DNA from: Podarcis muralis
Taxonomy: Eukaryota
Reading direction: 5' to 3'
Assembly: GCF_964188315.1 (NCBI RefSeq)
Contig: NC_135660.1
Span: 66,588,001 to 66,652,000, forward strand
DNA length: 64,000 nt
Shown: in pieces, positions 16,006-60,947 of the stretch
Position numbering within the stretch: position 1 is the stretch's first letter
Layout: each line of letters opens with the position of its first letter
Program-made: the position numbers and the translations under genes
The notes under the pieces: model-generated
Told to the model about the DNA's origin: nothing
What the model saw: the letters and a program-made list of their open reading frames with translations, nothing else
Database searches by the model: none

Positions 16006-18559
16006 TTTTGATTTCAGGGTGCTTTATATCCCTCCCCCCAATACAACACAGGCATTAATTCACATCCTGGAGGTGAAACAGAGAAAGGGGATTGGGAGGG
16101 CCAAGTCCAAGCCATTTTGCAGCAAGCAATCAGAGGAATGTGCCCCCTTCGTGCCATAACAGAGAAAGTACACATTTGGAGAATACACAACCATTTAGCC
16201 AGATATGGGATCTATAGGGAATGGGTATCATAAAGCCGGCACACTGGAAGGGCCTGGAACAAGTTTTAAAAGTCATATGCAGATCCAATATTTGCAGAAC
16301 AATCACAGGTGAGTTGGGACACACAACTTTTTGATTTTTTAATGCTATGCCATGGCACAGTGTTGTTCCCACTGGGTTATCCTCAGTGTGGAAAGCCACC
16401 AGGCTGCTCCTGCTTATAGCAGTTCATTTGTGCATGAATGGCAGAAACCCTTTTTCAGAAGAATGAAAATTGCATTGTATCTCCACCAGGTGTTCCCAAA
16501 TTCCCCCACCAACCCACGTATCACTTGAAAAGTGCTTTAGGTTCTTGGTGGACCACTTAATGATTTTTTTGGCCTGTTGTAGCCATTGCAGATGCTAGAG
16601 ATACTGTATGATTCTTAATTGCATTTTTACAGAAACCTTGTAGACCACCTGTATGAAGCTCATGGAGGTGGTCTATGAGACTCACAGACCACAGTTTGGG
16701 AACCCCTGACCTACATGGTACTACCAAAGCCCCTACAAGTTCATGGGTGATGAATGGTTCCATGAAAGGTGACACTTTCTCCTCAGTCACATCTAGAACC
16801 AGATTTTTATACAAACACTTCAGTTTTAGAGTTGTTTATTTAGCAGCACTGGTGCGTATGGACCCTACACACACTTCTTACATTCCATATGGAAAATTAG
16901 TGTTGAGAGGTTTTTTTGTGTGTATTACTTTTCATCTTGTTATTTACAAAATCCTCACAGGAATAGCTATTATAACGTGTGCTACCTCATCACTGTCATA
17001 TCCTGTCCTCACTAAAACATAACACGCCATTCCTGACATCGCTTCTCTTGTCACCATGTGAGATGCCAGATGCTTCGAGGTCAGTCAGAAACTGCAGCAA
17101 CCAGGGAATTTTTTTGCTGTCATCAAGAAATCCCCAGAGAAGCAGATTGGAATTATTGTCCCATCAGAAGGGTAAAGCCCCGGGATTTGATTAATTCTGC
17201 ACACACCGTCAAAAACATGCTAAAATTATTAGTAGCAAGAGGAGCTAATAGAAAGACAAATGTTTAACAATTTTGCAGAGTCCTCCCGCATGCCATCTCC
17301 TGTAAATCAGAATACAAAACTGATTACAAGGATTTTTAGGCGTGTGTGTTAATTACTGTAAGTTCATAAACAATATGTCCTAGAGACAGGAGCTGCTGAA
17401 GCAACTGTATATGCAAGCTATGCAACACATATGTGCCGTCTTTGTGTGAGCTTGTTTTGCTTGTCAGTGGTTTCCATCCTGTATGTGTGGCTTTTCTATG
17501 TCATTCTATAGGACCTCATTTACCTTCTGGGCAACGTTCTGAGGACTTTATGCCGGTGGTGGACAGAGGCAATACTAGGCAGATCAATTGCTGTAAATTT
17601 TACCTGAGCAATTTCCTTCTGTTATGGAGACCTTGTTTATTGTTGTTGAGCTTTTCTTCTTCTTTTTTACAAAAACACCAAAAAAACACTGACCACAGAC
17701 AGTACAAATTTAGCTGTGTTGTTCTATTTCACGGAGAAGAGATTCCGCTTCATGAGATGGCTCCTGTATGCCATAATGAGGTATGATGACTACTCACAAA
17801 GTCTTCCCACTTGACTTGGCTTCTGCAAGTTGGCTTATTATATGGCTGATTCATATAAGCCTTCTGCAAATCAGCTGCCTGAATTCTGTATCACAGACAA
17901 GGTAAACTAAATCACTTCACTATGGTTTTCTTCTAGACTTACATGTTAAAGTTCACTATATCAAACCTTGTCGGTGATACTGCAGCCTCAGAAGAAAATA
18001 AATTACATCCTAAACATGCCATTTCCAGGAAGGGGAAAGAGAACTACCATCCAATGCTGCTTAACAGGAGGCTCTGAAATCAAACTATATATGACTTTCC
18101 ATTCCACATGGGTGTAAATTGAGAAATGCAACTCAAAGAATGGCAGTAATTCCATATATCGAAATTCGATCACATATATAGAAGAGAAAAGATACAGATC
18201 AGGAGACATGGAAAGCAACTTGTTCTCTTTTCTAACAATTCCAGAGTTAATGTGACGAGCCTTCAGAACTCTAATCAGTTCCTTGTGGTGAATTGCAACC
18301 CCCAAAAGTATTTGGAAGATGGGTCTGATTGACATTTTGCAGGCTCTAGCTCAGGTTGCAGAAATGATACAACATTTCAATAGAAGGCACATGACGGCTT
18401 ACTACAGGGCATTCCAAAGAGGCCATTTGTTCTCTCATTGGTTTATTACTGCTGGCACTTCTTCTCTTTGTGCACTGAATATGAAGGTCTGAGAGAAAAT
18501 GTAGGAAGCTGCCTTGTGAGTCAGACCACTGGCCCATCTAGTTCAGAATTGTCTACACT

Positions 18560-38168: not shown

Positions 38169-38394
38169 CAGTGGTACCGCGGGTTACAGACGCTTCAGGT
38201 TACAGACTCCGCTAACCCAGAAATAGTACCTCAGGTTAAGAACTTTGCTTCAGGATAAGAACAGAAATTGTGCTCTGGTGGCGTGGCAGCAGCAGGAGGC
38301 CCCATTAGCTAAAGTGGTGCTTCAGGTTAAGAACAGTTTCAGGTTAAGAACGGACCTCCAGAACGAATTAAGTTCTTAACCCGAGGTACCACTA
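38169..38394. mobile_element. Tigger-type MITE
   Basis: TA-cagtggtaccgcgggtta...taacccgaggtaccact; caggttaagaac internal repeats. Confidence 0.87.
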
Positions 38395-39564: not shown

Positions 39565-40153
39565 TAATTTAATGTCTTTAAAAAGCAGGAAGAATAAAGT
39601 AACAGGATCCCGCACTAAATTATGACCAAGAAATATTTATAATGAAAAAGCAGCTTTCACACGGCCATTTCTTTTGGAAAGCTGGAGCTTCTGACAGCAG
39701 AAATTGAAATTCTAATGCAGCATGTACAAGCAGTTGCTCCATAAGCGAGGCTCATAAAACTATGGGTTTATGCAAACTTAAACTGAAATATAGATGTTGC
39801 TACTTTGGCAAACAATTCTGTTGAGTGTTTATTTCAATCTTTGGGGGAATTTAAAGGATTCACCAATCTAATTTTGTAACTCACAAATCTAGGAGCCAAG
39901 GCATAGCTCTGTAATTATGTACATTTGCAAAGCAATTATATTTGTTAGTACTGTACATTTTAAATGTGAACAAGTTCCTGCTGTAACGTCTGCAGATATA
40001 TGCAAATGAAAGAGAATGAACATTATAAAACTGTAGGGAAAAGAAGAGTTTTTCTCTTGGGTGCCTCTGCTTCTGCAAGAATACATTTGGGTCTCTGTTT
40101 AATGGTACTATACAGCCAATTAAGTTAGAAGATAGGAATTTTTTAACTCTTAC

Positions 40154-40378
40154 CCTTATTCTCACAGTGACAGTAGCAAGGCCTGGAGGCATTGTTCCCC
40201 CAATATCGAAGGCTTCCACTAAAAAAGTGAATGCTGCATCTGGGTCAGGAAATGACTCAAAATCCAAGGACTTTATAAGTGACAGGTCCCCGTTAAATCT
40301 GTTCAGCGAAAAATACTGCAACGCTTCCCGGGTTCGTATTCCATAGGTAATATTGGCTCCAAGGTCAATATCCTTAGC
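40154..40378 (-). CDS. PCDH15: PCDH15 exon (about 20), 225 bp: [75 protein letters not shown]
   Basis: ctag|GCTAAG acceptor, AGG|gtaaga donor. Confidence 0.96.
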
Positions 40379-41830: not shown

Positions 41831-42136
41831 CTCTAAACGTAAGAAGACAGTGCCTGGGGGCAGGTTTTCAGGAATAGTCACTGTATAGGAGGCATTCGTG
41901 AACACAGGGCTGTTGTCATCAATATCCAGAACTTTGATTCCCAGAGTTAACGTTGTACGGCGGGCATCCACAGCTCCATCTGTTGCTTCAACAATGAGTT
42001 CATAATAGTCCCTGTTTTCTCTATTTAGCTTCACTGAAGTGTAAATACTGCCATTGGATGTTATGCGGAAAAGATTGTTGAAGTTTGCCAAACTGTAACG
42101 GACTTGACCATTTACTCCAGCATCTGGGTCAGTAGC
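41831..42136 (-). CDS. PCDH15: PCDH15 exon (about 19), 306 bp: [33 protein letters not shown]...[32 protein letters not shown]
   Basis: ttag|GCTACT acceptor, GAG|gtaaga donor; overlaps ORF 41816-42091. Confidence 0.97.
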
Positions 42137-43294
42137 CTAAAAGATAAGGGAGGGGAAGAAACATGAAATCAGGAGTTTGTAGCACAAATAGACCCTTTTC
42201 AGGTTAATGGAAGGAATTCAGATTCTTTGATATCAGATTCATAGCCCCACAACCCTAAGAAAGCATGGGCATCCAGGGCCACTAATCCAAACCTCCTTGA
42301 CAGAAATCCAGCTTCAAGAAAGCAAGGTCCCTGAAGGTTGTGGGAAGGTGCAAAAATAAGCCTACATAGCTGCCTGGGGTTGCTCTAAAACTGGATGCAG
42401 GAATGCTAAATTCAAGTAGGGACCAGGAATTAAGAAGGCGGCTAGGAAGTCCACACCTGCAACGAATAGTTAAGCAGTAAGGATAAATAAACAGTAGCCG
42501 GTACAATACTCCATACAGACCCATTTCCCAAAGTCTACACTTTTTCCCCGAATCTCTTGAATTATATCTATAACGAAAAGAAAGAAACTCTGCTTGCTTC
42601 CACTTTCTGTTGGGTGTTACTAGTTGCCAGGGTGAATGAAATCCTCGACTCTGTTCCTTTGGTCACTTGCTGCCAGTCCTACTTGGACCCACATCCAGCC
42701 CTGCTCCATTACTCCATTAGAACCATGGAAGAGGAACAGAACTCAGAATATCAGCAGATGTGACACCATACCTCCTCTTCTCTTTACCTTAAATAAATCA
42801 AGGCCTAAGTAACTTGGCTGCATAAGAGAAGGGAATGCCTGCTTGTGTAAGGCAATTTCATTTGTGCACATTTCTAAGAGCCTGCAGATAACACCCCATA
42901 AGTTGTTACATAACATAAAAGTCCCTGGTTATCAGCACTACTGTCAGGAAGTTTCCAAAGACATTTAATATCCTGCCATGGTGCTCAGTGGGAGGCATAA
43001 TAATGAAACCATTTATCTTCATGGAAATCAATTAAAAGTTAATTAAAATGGTTAATAAAAATCACACACTTGTTTCTCTTTTGTACTACATCAACACAAT
43101 AAACATTGGTGGTTTCAGCTTTATTTGTGTCTCAGGTTAACACATCCTTGCAAACAACACCTTATCAAAGGTGCCTATGTGGTGCCTACGGTGGCTTCTG
43201 CAATATAAGTGTTAATGTTTAGAGAGTTGAAAGAAGCTGCTTTCACTGGGATGGGGGGCTCAGGTACAATAGTAGCATATGCTGCACAGGTTAC

Positions 43295-43368
43295 ATTTTT
43301 GCCTGATAGGCTGCTGCTAGAGGAATAGGATATTTTTGCCTGATAGGCTGCTGCTAGAGGAATAGGAT
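43295..43368. repeat. Perfect 37-bp tandem duplication
   Basis: atttttgcctgataggctgctgctagaggaataggat x2. Confidence 0.95.
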
Positions 43369-43833
43369 CTGTGCCCCAAGATTACTATTTTAGACACACA
43401 TTCAGCAGGTGCAACATTTACTACTAGACTATCTGCTTCTCCATCCAACATCTACAGCAGTGTTTCCCAAACGTTTTTGGGCAACGGCACACCTGTTTAC
43501 CGGAAAAAAATCTCGCGGCACACCACCATTAAAGCCCCGCCCCGTGACGTCAGCGCGCAGCGTCACGCCGGGAGGGACGCACAAAAGTGAAAGTTTTTTC
43601 CCTTCCCCTTGCCGGGGTGGGAGGAGGCAGCAGAGCGAGGGACTGAGGGACGGCGGCAGCTGAGGCGGCGGCGATAGCGGGCGGAGGAGGAGCCGTTGCC
43701 GGGAGTTGCTGCTGCTGCTGTTGCTGCTGCTGCCCGGACATGCCGGCCTCCTCCTCCTCCGCTGTCTCGCAAGCAACCCACCCTCCCCCCGCTTCCCCAG
43801 ACCGTCTCCCCCCCCCACCGCCGTGTCCCCTAC

Positions 43834-43961
43834 CTGTGCTGCAGCCCCACTAGCCCCAGCGTGATCACATGGGGCACGTCCAGCTCCGTGGGCCACAGGC
43901 CGGAGGCGATGCACCCGAACACGCCGCACTCCTCCCGAATCCCCAGCTCCTCGAATTCCAT
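43834..43961 (-). pseudogene. PPAT: Captured PPAT (amidophosphoribosyltransferase) coding exon 1 inside the hAT element: [42 protein letters not shown](R)
   Basis: ggcaccATGG Kozak; 128 nt coding; CAG|gtaggg donor. Near-identical to the recalled vertebrate PPAT N-terminus ([43 protein letters not shown]), including the 11-aa propeptide and catalytic Cys12. Below the ORF-track length cutoff. No further PPAT exons are present. Confidence 0.95.
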
Positions 43962-44400
43962 GGTGCCCGAGCGAACACGTGTTGTTGTCAGCGCAGCTGC
44001 TTCTGTTATTGCCGCTGCTGCCTCCTGCCGCCGCCGCCGCCTGGGTTTGAGGGGGGGGGCGGAGGAGGAGGAGAAGGAGGCGGCGGCCTCAGAGGCGCGA
44101 GTTCCTCTCCGCGCCCACCCCTTGCGCCCGCCTCATTTACATGCATACATTACGAAGGGGCGAAATTCCCCGCCTCGGGGCTGCTCCGCGTGGTGGAGTT
44201 GGTTTCCCCACCCCAGAGGAGCAGAGCAAGAGAGGTCGCCTTCGGGGCGGGGGGGGGCTACTTTGTATCTGCCTTTGGACACAAGTTAGCTCCCGCTCGC
44301 TCTTTCTCTCTCCCCACAAGTTAACTTTGTTTCCCTCTCTCTTTCTCTCCGCGCGCGCGCTTCTGAGAGCGAGTTTTGCCCAGTGGCTCCGAGAGTGTAA
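43962..44400. promoter_or_regulatory. Captured CpG-island sequence upstream of PPAT: probable PPAT 5'UTR and PPAT/PAICS bidirectional promoter
   Basis: Directly 5' of the PPAT ATG; dense CpG, GC-box-like cccgcc/ccccgcc motifs and a (CG)n run at 44350-44360. PPAT and PAICS are known to be head-to-head in chicken and mammals. Confidence 0.7.
44383..44396 (+). pseudogene. Possible degenerate PAICS first coding exon (GTG GCT CCG A GAG T|gtaaac)
   Basis: Position and orientation fit PAICS. It resembles an MAP(A)E-type start plus GT donor, but has GTG rather than ATG and is 14 nt rather than the about 16 nt I recall. Speculative. Confidence 0.25.
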
Positions 44401-44996
44401 ACGGCTGGCTGAAGTGCTGAGGAGACCGCGAAGGGCGGAGGGAGCTGGGCTTTGCGCGCGACGGAAGGGGTTATTCCCCCCCCCTTATGGAAACGGGGTT
44501 TGAGGGAATAAGGGGTAGGGAGGAGACTTCGGTTTTTGCGCGACTGAGCAGGGGAAGGGGGCGTCGGCGGGCGCTCGCCTCAGATTGGAGAAACGCTACC
44601 AAAGGGTTGTGAGCGGGGGGGGGGTGTTAAAAACATCCCTCCCTCCGTGGGTGGAGGAAAGGGGGCTGGGAGGCAGGATGTGGCCCCGGCGGAGAGTTTT
44701 AGGTGGCCCAACCCCTTCCCTTTCCCAATGAGGTGGAAGCATTGGCGGGTTTCTGCAACCGCGCCCCGCCCCCTTCCGCCGTCCGTGCCCCCCCCCTCCC
44801 TTCGTACGCAGCCCCAAAAGTGCCTCCGGACTCCGAACGCGCTTCTTTTTCGGGTCGCTTCCCTCTCGCGCGCTGCTCACTTGGTTTTGTTCTCTCCTAG
44901 GCGCCCGACTCGCCCGCCTCCCTCCCACGGCACACCAGCCGGTGTCTCACGGCACACTAGTGTGCCGCGGAACACCGGTTGGGAAACACTGATCTA

Positions 44997-45352
44997 CAGT
45001 GGTACCTCGCAAGACGAATGCCTCGCAAGACAAAAAACTCGCTAGACGAAAGGTTTTTTTGTTTTTTGAGCTGCTTTGCAAGACGATTTTCCCTATGGGC
45101 TTGCTTCGCAAAACGGAAACGTCTTGCAAGTTTGTTTCCTTTTTCTTAACACCGTTAATACAGTTGCGACTTGACTTCGAGGAGCAACTCATAGCACGCG
45201 GTGTGGTAGCCTTTTTTTGAGGTTTTTAAAGACTTTGGTGATTTTTGAAGCTTTTCCAAAACTTTCCCGACACCGTGCTTCGCAAGACGAAAAAAATCGC
45301 AAGACGACAAAACTCGCGGAACGAATTAATTTCGTCTTGCGAGGCACCACTG
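44997..45352. mobile_element. Tigger/pogo-type (Tc1-mariner) MITE
   Basis: TIRs cagtggtacctcgcaagacgaa / ttcgtcttgcgaggcaccactg; TA on both flanks; internal gcaagacg repeats. Confidence 0.9.
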
Positions 45353-46500
45353 TATTAGATTTCTGCCCTCCTTAAGAGTAACCTGTCATCAGGGGCAAAA
45401 AATAGCAATCCTAGTAGGTATTTGGATATGGTAGCAACACATATAAACAGGGTCTTGTCATAAAAGTGTATATAATATGGCGGATCTCTGTTATTCTCAT
45501 TTCACAGATGGGGAAATGTGTTCTCTTGTCTTCAAAACACCACCTGCTGTTGCCATTTCTGAAGGGGGAGACAGGGAAGGAGGGGGGAAGGCCATTTGGC
45601 TCAGTGCAGTCTCAGGGCCAGAGAGAATTTAATGATCTCAGCACTGTGGCTGCCCATGTCAAGCTCCCTTCCTCGCACCTCTCCCTCTTGATAATCAGCA
45701 GCAAGGTGTGGTGTTGGGATGCTGGGAGAGCAACACAGTTCCAACCACGCAGCCCTGCCAGCTGCTACTGGGTAAGTATGTTTGTGATGCACAGATCGAT
45801 TGGAAATCTAGGCCAGGCCTCCCAAGACTGGCTGCACTGGAGTTTTGCAATAAAAGTTGCTAACGGTAGCTAGTCATAGAGAGTACAAATTAAAAACATT
45901 TTTTAAAAACCTTGTTGCAAAATATTGCTTTCTTTTTTTTAAGCCAGAATGCATTGTGGGGATTTTAGCTGAGGGAGTAGTGACAGAACACTATATCTTC
46001 AAAGCCTTAATCCATGGAGCCAATGTGTGTGCTCAGATAGTTTTGCTTTAAACAAGGGCCACATGAAAGCAATTAAACAGCTGCTAACTGGATTACAACC
46101 AACACCCATTAAGACAATAGTAAATTAAAAAAGATTTATCGCTGTCTAAAATTCAACAGCCAAGTTAAGTTGTATAAACATGTAGCTCTTAATTTATCAG
46201 GGGAGCAGAAAGCGGAAATGCCCCCAAGTAACAAGAGAATTTTTATTTGTTAAAAGAACACTGCCACTGCCACACACAAAAAGCATTATTATTATTGCCA
46301 TTTTCTTCATTTGAAAAGTTCAAAGCGATTTTTGCTCCAATAAGCCCTCACGAAAAGCCTATAAAAGTAAATGAAGGTTTGGAAGAAGCCTATGACCCTA
46401 TTACTACACTACATATCCTGAATTAGCTGAAAGAAAGAAAATCAAGACTCATGCTCAAGGGAGGAGATAAAAATATAGGAACATCAGAGTTGGGAAATGC

Positions 46501-53983: not shown

Positions 53984-54998
53984 TTACGTTTTGCCAACAC
54001 TTTTATTGTTATTTCCATATTACTACTAGATGACAATTCTGGCTTCAGTGAAGACAGCACTTTGCATGATTTAAAAATTACAATGACACAGAAGATATAG
54101 ATGTGATGGAGGACTGATATATTCTATTCTGCTACTCAAGCTAAGGAATAAGTTGCATTTTGTTGTTTGAAATGACACACTGGCAGCATCCCGACAGAAC
54201 ATAAAACGGATTGAAAAAGATGTTTATTGCTACTCTAAAATGACATGACTATATCCTATAGAATGTAAAAAAATCCACCAGCCACAATTTAATCCCAGTT
54301 TCAAATAGTGTAGGCTCACTTCAAATTTTGTTCTGGAATATTTTATGAACACTGTTTTCACATTTCTTACTTAATATTCCAAAATTGGATTTGCACATTT
54401 GTGGAAAGCATCTCTCCACAGATGAGAAACGAAGGCTCCATTTTAGATGTCATCAAACGGGTACCTCCTATTTTTCTGCACAAAGTGAAGTGGTTCTAAC
54501 ATCACATGTTTACTCCAAAGGAAATCCCACTACATTGAATAGGGCTTACACTTTAGTGTTTAGGACTGCAGCCTTAATCACAATGTGGGCCAGAAAAGAA
54601 TTTTAGAGGGAAGTTTGTAAACATATTTCATTTCCACCCAAGTACTATGAGAGCAATACAGGAGAGGTTTGAAGTTGGTTTCATGGGGAACAGTTACCCA
54701 GATACCAAGGAAAGCTGTGAACAGGAAGGGTTTAGTATCCATGTGTCCCTTTTGCAACACTCCATTTCACATTCCCAACAGTTCATGCATGGATTTTGCC
54801 TCATGGTGGGTTGGGAGGCAGGGAGGGGTCATTAGCAAATTATATCTACTGAGATATGTTTAAGTTCATTTTTTTACCGAAAATGTGGTTAAAACCAACT
54901 TCATAAATTGGTGCCATCCACTGGACAACCTGGCAGCTTTAATTCATTTAGAGACAATTTCAAATCAGTATGTTCACCTTTGCTAGCAACAGACTTAC

Positions 54999-55127
54999 CC
55001 TCACTTGACCAACAAATGCATTGGCTTCCTCTTCTAGTACTGTAAGGTTCTTAGGCAGAAAAGGGTCAAAGACTGGCCCATTGTCATTTACATCTGTTAC
55101 AACCACATTCACTGTAGCAGTTGATGT
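54999..55127 (-). CDS. PCDH15: PCDH15 exon (about 18), 129 bp: [43 protein letters not shown]
   Basis: cag|ACATCA acceptor, AGG|gtaagt donor; DxNDN calcium-binding linker motif. Confidence 0.96.
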
Positions 55128-55390
55128 CTGCAAGAAAAAGGAAATAAAATTATGAAGCAGATGTTTTTACCTTACAGGAGGATACTTAGTGCTTATTATT
55201 GAAATTTGTATTCCACCATTCACCATAAGGGTAACATCCATAAGAATATAAGCAAATTAGAAACCATACAAAACACTAAACTATCTAAAACCATTATAAA
55301 AATGAATGCTACAGAGTTGGATTATCACAATTACATTGTACCTGGTGATACTTAGAAGGTACTGCGTTAGTAGGGTAGGAGAGATGATAC

Positions 55391-56682: not shown

Positions 56683-59326
56683 AGACAGTCCTATTATACC
56701 ATTACCCCAATCTCCAAGCGATATGAGATTCCAGGGGGTTCAAGAAAGGGAATATCCTGAATTTGTACACTTGGATGCTACATCCTACTGATGGAAAGCT
56801 CAATACATTCCTCTTTTACTTTATGTATTGGAGCTACAAGCTGAAAATAGAGTGCAGTAATTAGAAGCAAAGATGCAAATGTGACCTTTCCCATGAAAAG
56901 GTGTAACCACAGTGACAGTTAACTAGCCAAGATGAAGCAACTGAAGCAGGAGCTCCCATTCTGTACCTCATTACAGTCTTGCTGATGCTCCTATAAATGC
57001 AACTGCAAGTCTTAGAAATTTGCATTTTTTTTCCTGCTCACCAAACATTCTGTTTAAAATGAAATAAAGGTAAAAGTACTAAAATCCAAGTGCTAATATA
57101 CGGAAGGTTGCACCTTGGACAGATTGCCCCCCCCCCCACCCCTTGAGTTATATCTTCATTAGAGAAAACTGTGCACTAAACAGAGAAGGCATGCAAAGTC
57201 CATAGATGGAAGATGCATATACTGTATGATATGTTTATTTTTGTTTTTCTCACGTAGCATTTTCCTTTCCGCAAGAATATCCACAAGAAAATAATGAAAT
57301 AAAAATGTGAAATCTACATGGACTTTGCAGGAAAGTTCAACGAACAACAGGACAGAATCTAGCCTGTTGCTCATTGCTTACTTGACAAAATCCTTACTTG
57401 AGTTGTTTGGTATTCCAATCCCCACTCCCACCCTGGGGAGTATCTTCCCAAAGATAGGGAGGGGGGAAAAGACATCAAAATAATCTTCCTTATGGGCTTT
57501 CCACAGACAGGCACAGAAGAGGGATTTGGTAGATTGGGACCCCCAGACTATATCGTAGAGCCAGTGGAGAAAAAATAACATTTCAAAGCTAAGGATGAAA
57601 GGTTTAGGTAAAGGATTGTGCCATTTGTCAGCCAGGAAGTTTTGCCCGAGGCTGGTTTGCCCAGGCATCCTTTACCAAGTGGTGAATTCAACGTGTGATA
57701 AGACATCACAGATCTTACAGCATGGAAAGAGCTTTCACATTTTCTCACAATTGCATTCAGTAACAGGGTATAGGTAGAAGGAGTCATAGGGAATAGGTAG
57801 AACTCCATGTGGGGGCTGAAGGTCAGAAAACCATCTTGGCAGGCTGGGACAGAGGCACAGAGATGCCTTGGAAAGCCAGTGCTGCACTGCTGGGGAAACA
57901 AGACCCCCTTGAATTGTGAATGCTGTAAACTCTGCATTCCCTCCCTGGAGGGACAGTCTCTGCCACATCTTAATTCCCCACAGAAGCATGACCCTGAGTG
58001 AGTGCATAGAACTCCCCTGGAATCTTGCTACTTCTCGGCAGAGATTGGGGGTGGCATAGAACCTTTGCAATATTACGCATGTGAGCCAGCCTGTAGTCTC
58101 CAAAGCGCGGAACGAAATGTTATGGCAGACACAAGCGTACTTTCGAAACAGCAGCACTGTGTGACATTATCATGCTGTAATCCTCCCTGGGTCCACTCCA
58201 CTGGCTGCAGCATTGTGAGATAGGGAAACATAATATCATGTATTGAGTATCCCTTGATTTTCAAGAGGAGAACAAGACACAACATTGCCATTTTTTTGTG
58301 GCAGTCCTCTGTCATTCATAATATATAATTCCTCTCTAAGCTTGCCTCCTTATGGACACTTGTATCTAAACGCAGCACATGAATTTCACTGTTAAGAGAA
58401 TAGTATCGGTTTAGTAGCAACTCATTGCTCATAAATGCTTTCATTATTTAATTTTAGCACTATAAACACTACTGAAATCTTACATTATAAGCAACAGTTC
58501 AATTCCCCAAAATGTTGCTTCATTTACAGTAGCAAGTATGAACATTTCAGGTGGAAGAAGTGGAACCATGATCCAAAGAAAGACTACTATCCAGGATATG
58601 TTGACAGCATTTAAGAGAAATGTAGTATTAGGCAGTAAATGGAAGATTACCTTTTAGTATTAAGAAAGATCACTTGTCACTAGCAGTCAATTACATCATC
58701 ATTGATAACAAATAATGTAAGAAAGCAAAACCTCCTAACATCTCAAGAGCTAACCTAATTTGTAAAAAAAATGTTCTCTATACCATAGCTAGTGGAAGAA
58801 AACATTTGATATAGTTTTCCTTATGATTTGTCACACAACCTTTTCAAAATGATTTCCCCAGTGCTAGGGGGGAAATTGAACCAACTATATCTGCCATGTG
58901 CAAAGTCTCTGTAGAGATTCTGGTAAAATGTTTTTATATGGCACAACAAGTATCTCAGGTTATGAGTGCAAAGGAAAATGTTCAAAAATGATATGTGAGA
59001 GACTTGGGCAGTGTCCTGGCCCCAGGGAGCTGGAACAGCCATAAGATGTCCCCCATGGGATGTCCCTCGCAGTGTGCAGTGTCTGTACTGGCCATAAAAA
59101 AAAACCAATGGGAGGTCAGAGGATGTGACACAAATCATTTCAGTTGCAGCTCTATTTCCAAAACAGCACATTGGAGGCATTCACACAAAACCTCCCAACA
59201 TAAAGGGGAATTACTGAGGGTTATAGACAGTTTAACAAAGACTTGCCCTGTTTTGGCTGCGCTGCTCTCAGTGCCCTGTTGTTTAGGTCTCAGAAACTTG
59301 TTTTTATATTTCTACAAGAAACTTAC

Positions 59327-59420
59327 CCCATCTGGCCGGCCATCTGAGGCTGTAACAATCAAAATGTAGCGATCGGTGCTTTCTCTGTCTAAAGGCTTTC
59401 CTAAGGCTAGAAGTCCAGAT
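59327..59420 (-). CDS. PCDH15: PCDH15 exon (about 17), 94 bp: (T)[31 protein letters not shown]
   Basis: ctag|ATCTGG acceptor, GGG|gtaagt donor; frame continues from the previous exon; absent from the ORF track. Confidence 0.95.
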
Positions 59421-60705
59421 CTAGCAATAAAACAAACATGTATGTTACATAAAAATATGGCTCCTAAAAATTGACAAGCACTATATATATATATGCTGCT
59501 GGGTTGGTTGCATTAGTGAATACTTCTCATTGTGATTTTCCTCTGTAAAAACTGCAGACAAGTACTTTGTTTTCACATTAAAAAATAAAACAAACCACAA
59601 ACCACTAAGTGCTAGGAATAGACCAAAACTATTCTCACGGAGGAAGTTACAAGGCAAGTATGTTTTTTTCATTAACTTCTGCTGATGCAGAAGATCAGAA
59701 CTCTCAATTCAGGGACATCTTTATTATACCATTTTGAGTAAACTATATTCTTTCCTTATAGCTTACCTAATTTGGCAATATAAGCAGCAAAACAATTGTG
59801 GCTTTCACACACAACCAGTCACAATAGAAATCTGAATTCATGACCAACTCTTCAGGCAAAAGGTTCACAGCAGACAATGGATGTGAACAATCCACTTTCT
59901 CTGTGCAGCTACATACTGAGTTATTTGTATTACTGGCTAGCAAACATTTCCACATGGTGCTATACATGGAGAAAGGGTTTCCCTATTCCCATAGTTCCAT
60001 TTTGCTCAACCCCTATCTGCAGAAGATATGAGAAACTGGCACAGCATGGGAAAACCGTAATTGGTTCTTTAAGAGCTATCTGACACTGATGTGCCATGCC
60101 AGAATGGCCTTTGGAGGTGGAGAGCATGTCCAGTTACTTCCAACTTCATTTTAGCTTTTAAAGGACGCCCCTGGACATGGGATTGTATTTCAAGCCTCTC
60201 CGATCTGCTTGATCATTCGAGAAGTGATCGGTTGTGGCATCCAAATACTAGAATTAAGTATTTTGTTTTTCTCCATTCCTGTTTTGTATTCAATGGCTCC
60301 CATTATCCTAGGATCATCTGAGTTCAATGGAAGCAGAGACAAACTGCTCTACATCAGTCAGTTCTAAGGCATGTATATGCTGCAGCACCATTTCACCACC
60401 AAATTTCTTCCAATTCTAAAAGCTTGCATACATAACATAGACCTGCCCTTCTGTCCCAGGAACATCAAAGTGCAACGGAGATGCCATTTGGGCTCCTACA
60501 ACATGACCTGGCTCTTCTGACGATACCACTCAACAGCTGCCATCTCCTAAAGGGAGCACTGGCCCTGGATTACCAACAGGGCATTTTAAAACTCTTTTAT
60601 TCTGAAATCAGAAGAAACCCTTGAAATGAGAAGAGCAGTGCTGTGTTTATATTTTATTTCTATTTTTTTGCTGTTAATTAGGTGCTAGTTAATTAATCAG
60701 TAATA

Positions 60706-60947
60706 CAGTGGTACCTCAGTTTAAGAACAGTCCGGTTTATGAATGATTCGGTTTACAAACTCCACGAAACCGGAAATAAGTGTCTTCATTTGACAACTTT
60801 ACCTCGGTCTAAGAATGGAATCTGAACAGTGGAAGGGCACTGGTGGTGGGAGGCCTCATTAGGGAAAGCGTGCCTCGGTTTAAGAATGGTTTTGGTTTAA
60901 GAACGGATTTCCGGAATGGATTAAGTTCGTAAACTGAGGTACCACTG
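60706..60947. mobile_element. Tigger-type MITE
   Basis: TA-cagtggtacctcagttta...taaactgaggtaccactg-TA. Confidence 0.9.

Follow-up and report, generated by a model that had tools for sequence, protein, structure and literature searches.

A probable multicopy Pack-hAT transposon with the promoter and first exon of PPAT, inserted in a PCDH15 intron of Podarcis muralis

We analysed a stretch of 64,000 nucleotides from Podarcis muralis (NC_135660.1, positions 66,588,001 to 66,652,000 of the forward strand), referred to below as the window; coordinates count from its first letter. Positions 43458-44991 are one non-autonomous hAT-type insertion of ≈ 1.5 kb. It lies in an intron of PCDH15, the gene for protocadherin-15, and its interior holds the first exon and the promoter region of PPAT, a purine-synthesis gene that is arranged head-to-head with PAICS. 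The features are collected in Table 1. For the reasons given below, we regard it as highly probable that the insertion is a Pack-hAT, that is, a non-autonomous element of the Pack-TIR type (TIR, terminal inverted repeat), and that it is multicopy in P. muralis or a very close relative.

Table 1. Features of the insertion and of its surroundings in the PCDH15 intron (TSD, target-site duplication; MITE, miniature inverted-repeat transposable element; ORF, open reading frame; UTR, untranslated region)
Feature	Positions	Strand	Remarks
Left TSD copy ATCTACAG	43450-43457		Abuts the left TIR; fits the pattern nTnnnnAn
Left hAT arm	43458-43600	+	TIR and two CGGCACAC subterminal repeats; inner limit (≈ 43600) approximate
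GC-rich segment	43601-43770	-	170 bp; (CAG)n-rich ORF, ATG at 43741; candidate second capture or element-internal DNA
PPAT intron 1 remnant	43771-43833	-	63 nt; opens with the donor GTAGGG
PPAT exon 1, coding part	43961-43834	-	42 codons + 2 nt, phase 2; ATG at 43961
Captured upstream DNA	43962-44903		PPAT 5' UTR and CpG-island intergenic promoter; right limit ± ≈ 10 nt
Right hAT arm	44904-44991	+	TIR 44979-44991 and three CGGCACAC repeats
Right TSD copy ATCTACAG	44992-44999		Final 3 bases are the first 3 bases of the MITE
Tc1/mariner-like MITE	44997-45352	+	356 bp; 22-bp TIR CAGTGGTACCTCGCAAGACGAA, 21/22 between ends; TA TSD
Next downstream PCDH15 exon	41831-42136	-	Phase 0-0; matches protocadherin-15 residues 719-790; 1.7 kb from the PPAT donor

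Both ends of the insertion have the anatomy of a hAT element. The TIR CAGTGTTTCCCAA (43458-43470) recurs as its exact reverse complement at the right end and is perfect over 13 bp. The consensus of hAT TIRs starts with YARNG, and CAGTGTTTCCCAA conforms to it. The TSD ATCTACAG is identical in 8 of 8 letters between its two copies, its second letter being T and its seventh A; an 8/8 direct repeat flush with both element ends would arise by chance with a probability of ≈ 4^-8. The motif CGGCACAC occurs five times within at most ≈ 80 nt of the element ends, compared with 0.43 occurrences expected across the whole window, and it is a subterminal repeat of the type carried by hAT elements. None of eight scanned ORFs of the element (63 to 197 residues) gave a Pfam match above threshold, and the element therefore contains no transposase. 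An earlier reading of the letters alone (the original prediction) had called one hAT insertion with 13-bp TIRs, a perfect 8-bp TSD and no transposase, and both the anatomy and the Pfam scan agree with this. The exact 13-bp TIR was found nowhere else in the 64-kb window, in which matches with two mismatches were at chance level, and no further copy of the element was found there. The GC content of the element is 0.64, and its observed/expected (o/e) CpG ratio is 0.81, compared with 0.17 to 0.20 in the flanks.

Four public read runs were compared with positions 42700-45800; one of them, X10, is filed under a different species label. The word depth of the single-copy flank was 18.6 in X1, 13.4 in X4 and 11 in X10. 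In the arms, word depth rose to ≈ 10^5 on the left and ≈ 2 × 10^5 on the right, against 11 to 19 in unique flank, and the backbone must therefore belong to a hAT family with thousands of copies. Such high summed depths (≈ 10^5 to 2 × 10^5) cover 43428-43635 and 44884-44987. The read contigs also delimit the arms: on the left they part from the window at 43596-43614, and on the right loose contig ends lie at 44911 and 44944, where contigs of the backbone type begin to match.

Between the arms lies DNA derived from PPAT. Over residues 12-42, the exon-1 peptide agreed in 29 of 31 positions with solved amidophosphoribosyltransferase chains (E = 6 × 10^-14); a Pfam scan of the 42-residue peptide alone was uninformative, the peptide being too short. 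The start codon stands in a strong Kozak context, GCACCATGG, and the exon ends at the donor CAG/GTAGGG. The string GLWPTELD is also present in the N-terminus of Crotalus PPAT, and the N-terminus encoded by exon 1 is thus squamate-like. These results bear out the assignment of 43961-43834 (minus strand) to the N-terminus of PPAT, with its strong Kozak context and GT donor.

The segment upstream of the start codon measures ≈ 940 bp, has a CpG o/e ratio of 0.82 and probably takes in the first part of the PAICS transcript, which diverges from that of PPAT. Its right boundary is marked by an X4 contig that agrees with the window up to 44903 and then continues for 313 nt unlike the window. At the other side, a contig of X10, the sister taxon, agrees with the window from 43770 rightwards and differs over the 763 nt leftwards, and contigs that agree from the left side break away at 43770. 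In the PPAT contigs of another squamate (L004-L012) homology stops at 43780-43802; these sequences are diverged (86%) and only bracket the intron boundary. Together, the divergence of the contigs at 43770 and the end of homology show that the intron remnant is only 63 nt long. Thus, of the flanks originally assigned to the exon, the upstream CpG island stands, at ≈ 940 bp, whereas intron 1 does not extend to ≈ 43590 but ends at ≈ 43771, so that the ≈ 240 bp first proposed must be shortened accordingly. The PPAT-derived cargo is ≈ 43771-44903, or ≈ 1.13 kb. The adjoining GC-rich segment (43601-43770) has an origin other than the PPAT intron. Its minus-strand ORF begins MSGQQQQQQQQQLPATAPPP (MSGQQQ), and the segment, which gave no Pfam match, may represent a further 5' exon captured from a different gene.

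The host gene was identified from the ORFs on either side. The minus-strand ORF at 54963-55166, which contains the preceding PCDH15 exon, matches residues 676-720 of protocadherin-15 chain 11iy_C, and the next exon downstream continues from residue 719. Since the two matches are consecutive, the element lies within a PCDH15 intron of ≈ 12.9 kb, the location given by the original prediction. PPAT exon 1 and PCDH15 have the same orientation (minus). ORFs with cadherin-repeat motifs (LDRE, DxNDNxP) are found on the minus strand at 59315-59512, 54963-55166, 41831-42136, 39884-40378 and 1086-1397. Two of these five are confirmed as consecutive PCDH15 exons, and the window as a whole contains about five.

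The MITE at the right edge of the element has inverted ends that begin CAGTGGTACC and has relatives in the window at 38171-38392 and 60708-60945. Its summed read depth is ≈ 10^6, and RNA reads heavily include it. This MITE is itself polymorphic: it is present in X1 and absent from X10 and from one X4 allele. Of the 8 nt targeted by the hAT insertion, 3 belong to the flank, 2 are the TA and 3 form the beginning of the MITE.

The read runs contain alleles without the insertion. A contig of X1 joins 43449 to 44992, skipping 1542 bases with 8 shared letters, at a depth of 17.9, compared with 18.6 for unique sequence. This joint is therefore the exact empty site in another individual, with the MITE present and a single ATCTACAG, as had been predicted. 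A different joint, from 43452 to 45353, was found in two further individuals, X4 (depth 7.2) and X10 (depth 11); it skips 1900 bases with 2 shared letters and represents the allele with neither the MITE nor the Pack element, that is, the ancestral TA site. The three alleles thus give the order of events: an ancestral TA site, insertion of the MITE, and then insertion of the hAT element. Because all three are still visible, the insertion was made by a transposase and is very recent. We conclude that the insertion in the PCDH15 intron is young and polymorphic.

It is also rare or private. With a 60-nt query across the left junction, from which two words were sampled, both words were found only in two runs of one sample, so that the insertion is present at the read level in at least one sample. 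Other runs, including three further species labels, contain one of the two words, presumably one that lies almost wholly in the MITE arm.

The cargo, by comparison, is abundant in the reads. Its contigs had depths of 427.6, 283.6 and 197.4 in X1, 140.9 in X4, and 77.1 and 114.8 in X10, which is ≈ 7 to 23 times the unique depth and includes two runs, X1 and X10, that both lack the insertion in the PCDH15 intron. Word depth on a contig is not a copy number, as the read tool itself warns; with this proviso, the cargo appears to be multicopy, with roughly 10 to 20 near-identical copies. The original prediction had mentioned the spread of a promoter and splice donor only on the condition that the element be multicopy. 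Given the excess depth and three P. muralis gene models with exon 1 (see below), this condition appears to be true. Three independent Logan contigs, found by means of the 43-residue exon ORF, were 99.2 to 99.4% identical to 43821-44773 and end inside the cargo; their differences from the window are mostly slips in repeat length. An identity of at least 99.2% to these collapsed contigs and the undecayed CpG content (o/e 0.81) indicate that the family is very young.

Two sequence types can be told apart near the right end of the cargo. In X1, which lacks this insertion, sequence of the window type at 44873-44878 stands beside the right arm at a depth of 273. A variant that has 44873T and 44878A, and 17 bp inserted at 44864, had a depth of 9 in X10, which is about single copy, and in X4 the 44873T/44878A variant sits on the contig that runs 313 nt past the capture boundary. 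We presume that this variant represents the parental PPAT/PAICS locus. The X10 contig with 763 nt of other sequence past the opposite boundary likewise suggests such a locus.

The 42-residue exon peptide was searched against 1.84 billion representative proteins. Three UniRef entries of P. muralis have an identical exon-1 N-terminus: A0A670I8T7 (60 residues), A0A670KLX4 (74 residues) and A0A670HW21 (79 residues). A0A670KLX4 was reproduced exactly by a splice from 43834 to 43659 inside the element, which removes an intron of 174 nt; the acceptor is the AG at 43661-43660, after a pyrimidine tract, and exon 2 starts at 43659 on the minus strand. A0A670HW21 has the same backbone tail (...GKGKGKNFHFCASLPV) with two substitutions, and uses an acceptor 15 nt upstream, where the window has TA instead of AG. 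It must therefore derive from a different copy that has the same chimeric architecture. For A0A670I8T7, the tail is absent from the window and hence comes from a third locus. Exact look-ups of A0A670I8T7, A0A670KLX4 and the 197- and 132-residue ORFs of the element gave no match, and a search with A0A670KLX4 returned no further chimeric ORFs of the Podarcis type. It thus seems that at least some copies are transcribed, with splicing into cryptic acceptors.

At the RNA level, exon 1 gave a strand-specific signal (depth 8.45 in the sense direction versus 0), in which the parent and the copies are not distinguishable. Plus-strand RNA, that is, RNA in the PAICS sense, was detected at 44780-44883 in run X23. 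In the same run, 11 reads with ten start points join 44992 to 43451, a step back of 1542, through letters resembling the TSD; this joint could reflect two adjacent elements elsewhere or a tandem copy, but also the junction of a circle or an artefact of the library. Six small runs (X15-X20), guessed to be RNA, contain a fraction of 0.50 to 0.63 of the words sampled from 43300-45150, including promoter DNA. Their signal could be read-through of intronic copies, transcription of Pack elements, or an open-chromatin-enriched library.

We also considered a fusion of PPAT exon 1 with PCDH15. The two exons meet in phases 2 and 0, and the predicted product reaches a stop after 8 codons, giving a peptide of 50 residues; an in-frame PPAT-PCDH15 fusion was rejected on these grounds. 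Since the splice would be out of frame, any effect at PCDH15 would come about via promoter interference or a nonsense transcript rather than through a fusion protein.

The following course of events would best explain the data. The interior of a member of an abundant hAT MITE family would have been replaced, at the DNA level, by the ≈ 1.13 kb from the PPAT/PAICS locus, which holds PPAT exon 1 followed by its donor and 63 bp of intron 1, together with all of the CpG-island promoter and probably the beginning of PAICS. The 170-bp GC-rich piece of other origin would have joined this cargo. The promoter and intron DNA present in the element rule out retroposition and agree with a capture of DNA, as originally proposed. 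As to the route, we infer that template switching during repair or replication is likely, which corresponds to the 'FoSTeST' route that Tan et al. proposed for multicopy Pack-TIRs (PMC8277862). The chimera would then have moved by cut-and-paste, with a hAT transposase presumably acting in trans, to give roughly 10 to 20 near-identical copies. The copy described here would be among the latest jumps, into ATCTACAG across the edge of the older MITE. Structurally, each copy would be a promoter with a first exon and a donor, and thus a potential exon trap; where a copy lies in an intron in the sense direction, as here, its donor could be joined to the following host exon, which in PCDH15 is 1.7 kb away.

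A bolder version of this scheme is that the hAT family is transposing now in wild wall lizards and carries a working bidirectional CpG-island promoter, first exon and donor. We offer this tentatively and think it rather unlikely on present data. If it were true, each insertion would be a natural exon-trap or promoter-insertion mutation, and the family would make lineage-specific chimeric transcripts, the three annotated mini-genes being examples, that segregate as polymorphisms. Wall lizards would then offer an amniote system in which to watch regulatory evolution driven by gene capture in progress.

Several observations weigh against a multicopy Pack-hAT. A second copy bounded by its own TIRs, with a different TSD, was not seen. 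The estimate of copy number leans on word depth. The PPAT/PAICS locus of this species was not recovered; protein searches reached an Anolis representative and the Zootoca isoform X2. No autonomous hAT partner was identified, and no lizard genome was searched for one. The words across the left junction come from one sample, maybe the source of the assembly itself, and their independent support is weak. In X23, every one of the 30 RNA reads on the PAICS side has 44873T/44878A and none is of the Pack type; on this side, the Pack copies look silent in the X23 tissue. Finally, the spliced transcript is known from an annotation model only, and no splice joint was seen in the RNA run examined.

Could the element be the sole Pack copy, with segmental or tandem duplicates of the PPAT/PAICS promoter region, or longer non-hAT duplicates, accounting for the cargo depth? 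Majority contigs do pass both capture boundaries, by 763 nt on the left (X10) and 313 nt on the right (X4), and no other TIR-bounded copy has been seen directly. The mean depth of these extended contigs, however, is in line with a mixture of multicopy and low-copy sequence. Furthermore, A0A670HW21 combines exon 1 with the same backbone tail, carries two substitutions and requires an acceptor that is missing here, which argues for a second chimeric copy, and X1 has window-type sequence beside the right arm at a depth of 273 yet lacks the insertion. We therefore consider a sole copy unlikely. Gap filling at this single site, in which a resident hAT element would have been broken and mended with PPAT DNA as filler, independently of transposition, has precedent, since it is by gap filling, and as single copies, that most animal Pack-TIRs arose (PMC8277862). 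Here, however, the empty alleles are without any hAT element, having either the ancestral TA or an intact MITE with one ATCTACAG. The whole chimera must therefore have arrived as one unit and produced a new TSD. That the cargo appears to be multicopy speaks against the same explanation. Gap filling in situ was thus rejected because the empty alleles have no hAT element at the site, and we give it very little weight.

An equally small chance attaches to an assembly chimera, in which a PPAT promoter contig was misjoined between two repeat ends. Misjoins typically occur in very high-copy repeats such as the two arms, and 0 short-read contigs span either junction in the four runs. Such an origin is difficult to reconcile with a perfect 8-bp TSD flush with perfect TIRs, with the finding that removal of the element and one TSD copy gives exactly the X1 allele, and with junction-spanning 31-mers in two read sets of one sample. 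Nothing except the presence of an exon would suggest a retrocopy or another RNA-mediated duplicate of PPAT. A processed retrocopy is intronless and has a poly(A) tract, an L1-type TSD and no promoter. The element differs on these counts: it contains ≈ 940 bp of untranscribed promoter and an unspliced intron, has no poly(A), and ends in TIRs with an 8-bp TSD. With promoter and intron DNA present and poly(A) absent, we rejected this explanation, whose probability we regard as negligible.

A Pack-hAT also fits what is known of related elements. The 8-bp TSD of the form nTnnnnAn, the short TIRs and the occupied and empty alleles, which differ by one inserted unit, are those of a hAT element, and an interior of host gene DNA without a transposase is that of a Pack-TIR. 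A Helitron, on the other hand, would have 5'-TC...CTRR-3' ends, a 3' hairpin, an A/T insertion site and neither TIR nor TSD, whereas the PPAT element has both TIRs and an 8-bp TSD. In a survey of 100 genomes, Tan et al. (2021, Nat Commun, PMC8277862) described 370 animal Pack-TIRs, of which 208 were Pack-hAT and only 4 of the 370 multicopy; the original prediction had held such captures to be rarely reported in vertebrates, which understates this prior art. Lizards are not mentioned in the main text of that paper (PMC8277862). The PPAT element resembles the animal Pack-hATs in its TIRs, 8-bp TSD and captured DNA interior from a host gene, and it would resemble the rare multicopy class of Pack-TIRs in a probable spread to distant sites by transposition. 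Among published elements, Pack-hAT-N8_XT of Xenopus tropicalis has three copies with a 291-bp piece of the CAPSL 5' UTR (PMC8277862). Unlike this element, the PPAT element has a depth that suggests ≈ 10 to 20 copies, and it carries an entire bidirectional CpG-island promoter together with first exon and donor. Unlike the elements of the survey, it has at least one polymorphic insertion of which all three alleles are visible.

Its closest functional analogue is the Helitron HelibatN3 of vespertilionid bats, in which six codons and a splice donor accompany the NUBPL promoter (PMC4778049, PMC4224331). In both, the cargo is a housekeeping promoter, a short N-terminal coding sequence and a donor, multiplied genome-wide in bats and apparently also here, and exon trapping is possible where a copy lies in the sense direction in an intron, as the PPAT element does in PCDH15. 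For HelibatN3, promoter activity and exon trapping were shown experimentally (PMC4778049); activity of the promoter in the PPAT element, by contrast, is putative. Promoters captured from 15 genes together reached 4,690 copies in bats. The mechanisms differ, in that Helitrons move by rolling-circle transduction past a weak terminator and have no TIR or TSD, whereas the PPAT element is a cut-and-paste hAT element. The Pack-MULEs and Pack-TYPE elements of plants are likewise TIR elements with host gene fragments, often chimeras of several loci, and the PPAT element may be chimeric too (43601-43770 joined to the PPAT piece). Unlike it, plant Pack-MULEs belong to the Mutator superfamily, with a TSD of 9-11 bp and long TIRs, and are far more numerous per genome. 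With respect to a partner, Anolis carolinensis has recently active hAT and non-autonomous hAT families (Novick et al. 2011, PMC3014272). Young hAT and Tc1/mariner families are numerous in squamate genomes, in keeping with an active partner for the PPAT element. The terms 'captured' and 'host gene' are not mentioned in the text of Novick et al. (PMC3014272).

Both Pack-hATs in vertebrates and the capture of a promoter together with a donor (bat Helitrons) were thus already known, and the PPAT element adds to these. What is unusual is its apparent copy number, the complete bidirectional promoter in its cargo, and a segregating insertion for which all historical alleles are visible. Cut-and-paste transposons that still move are uncommon in amniotes, and multicopy ones that carry genes are rarer, with four in the survey of 100 genomes. 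The element makes it possible to test whether captured promoters that are scattered through a genome stay unmethylated and active. It can also show how frequently host exons are trapped and how selection acts on insertions, including one in PCDH15, which is a deafness gene. For genome annotation, the short P. muralis proteins labelled 'glutamine amidotransferase type-2 domain' are most likely products of copies of the element and not real genes.

Two minor features of the window may be mentioned. Another hAT-like terminus, CAGGGGTTCCCAAACTGTGGTC, lies on the minus strand at 16690-16712, and 13 of its first 16 bases are like the TIR of the Pack element; this resemblance hints at a related, Charlie-like hAT lineage. 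Close to the left edge of the element, at 43300-43368, there is a perfect 32-nt direct repeat with a spacing of 37 nt, that is, a tandem duplication of 37 bp. An X10 contig passes from 43294 to 43332, skipping 37 bases, and thus has a single copy of this repeat.

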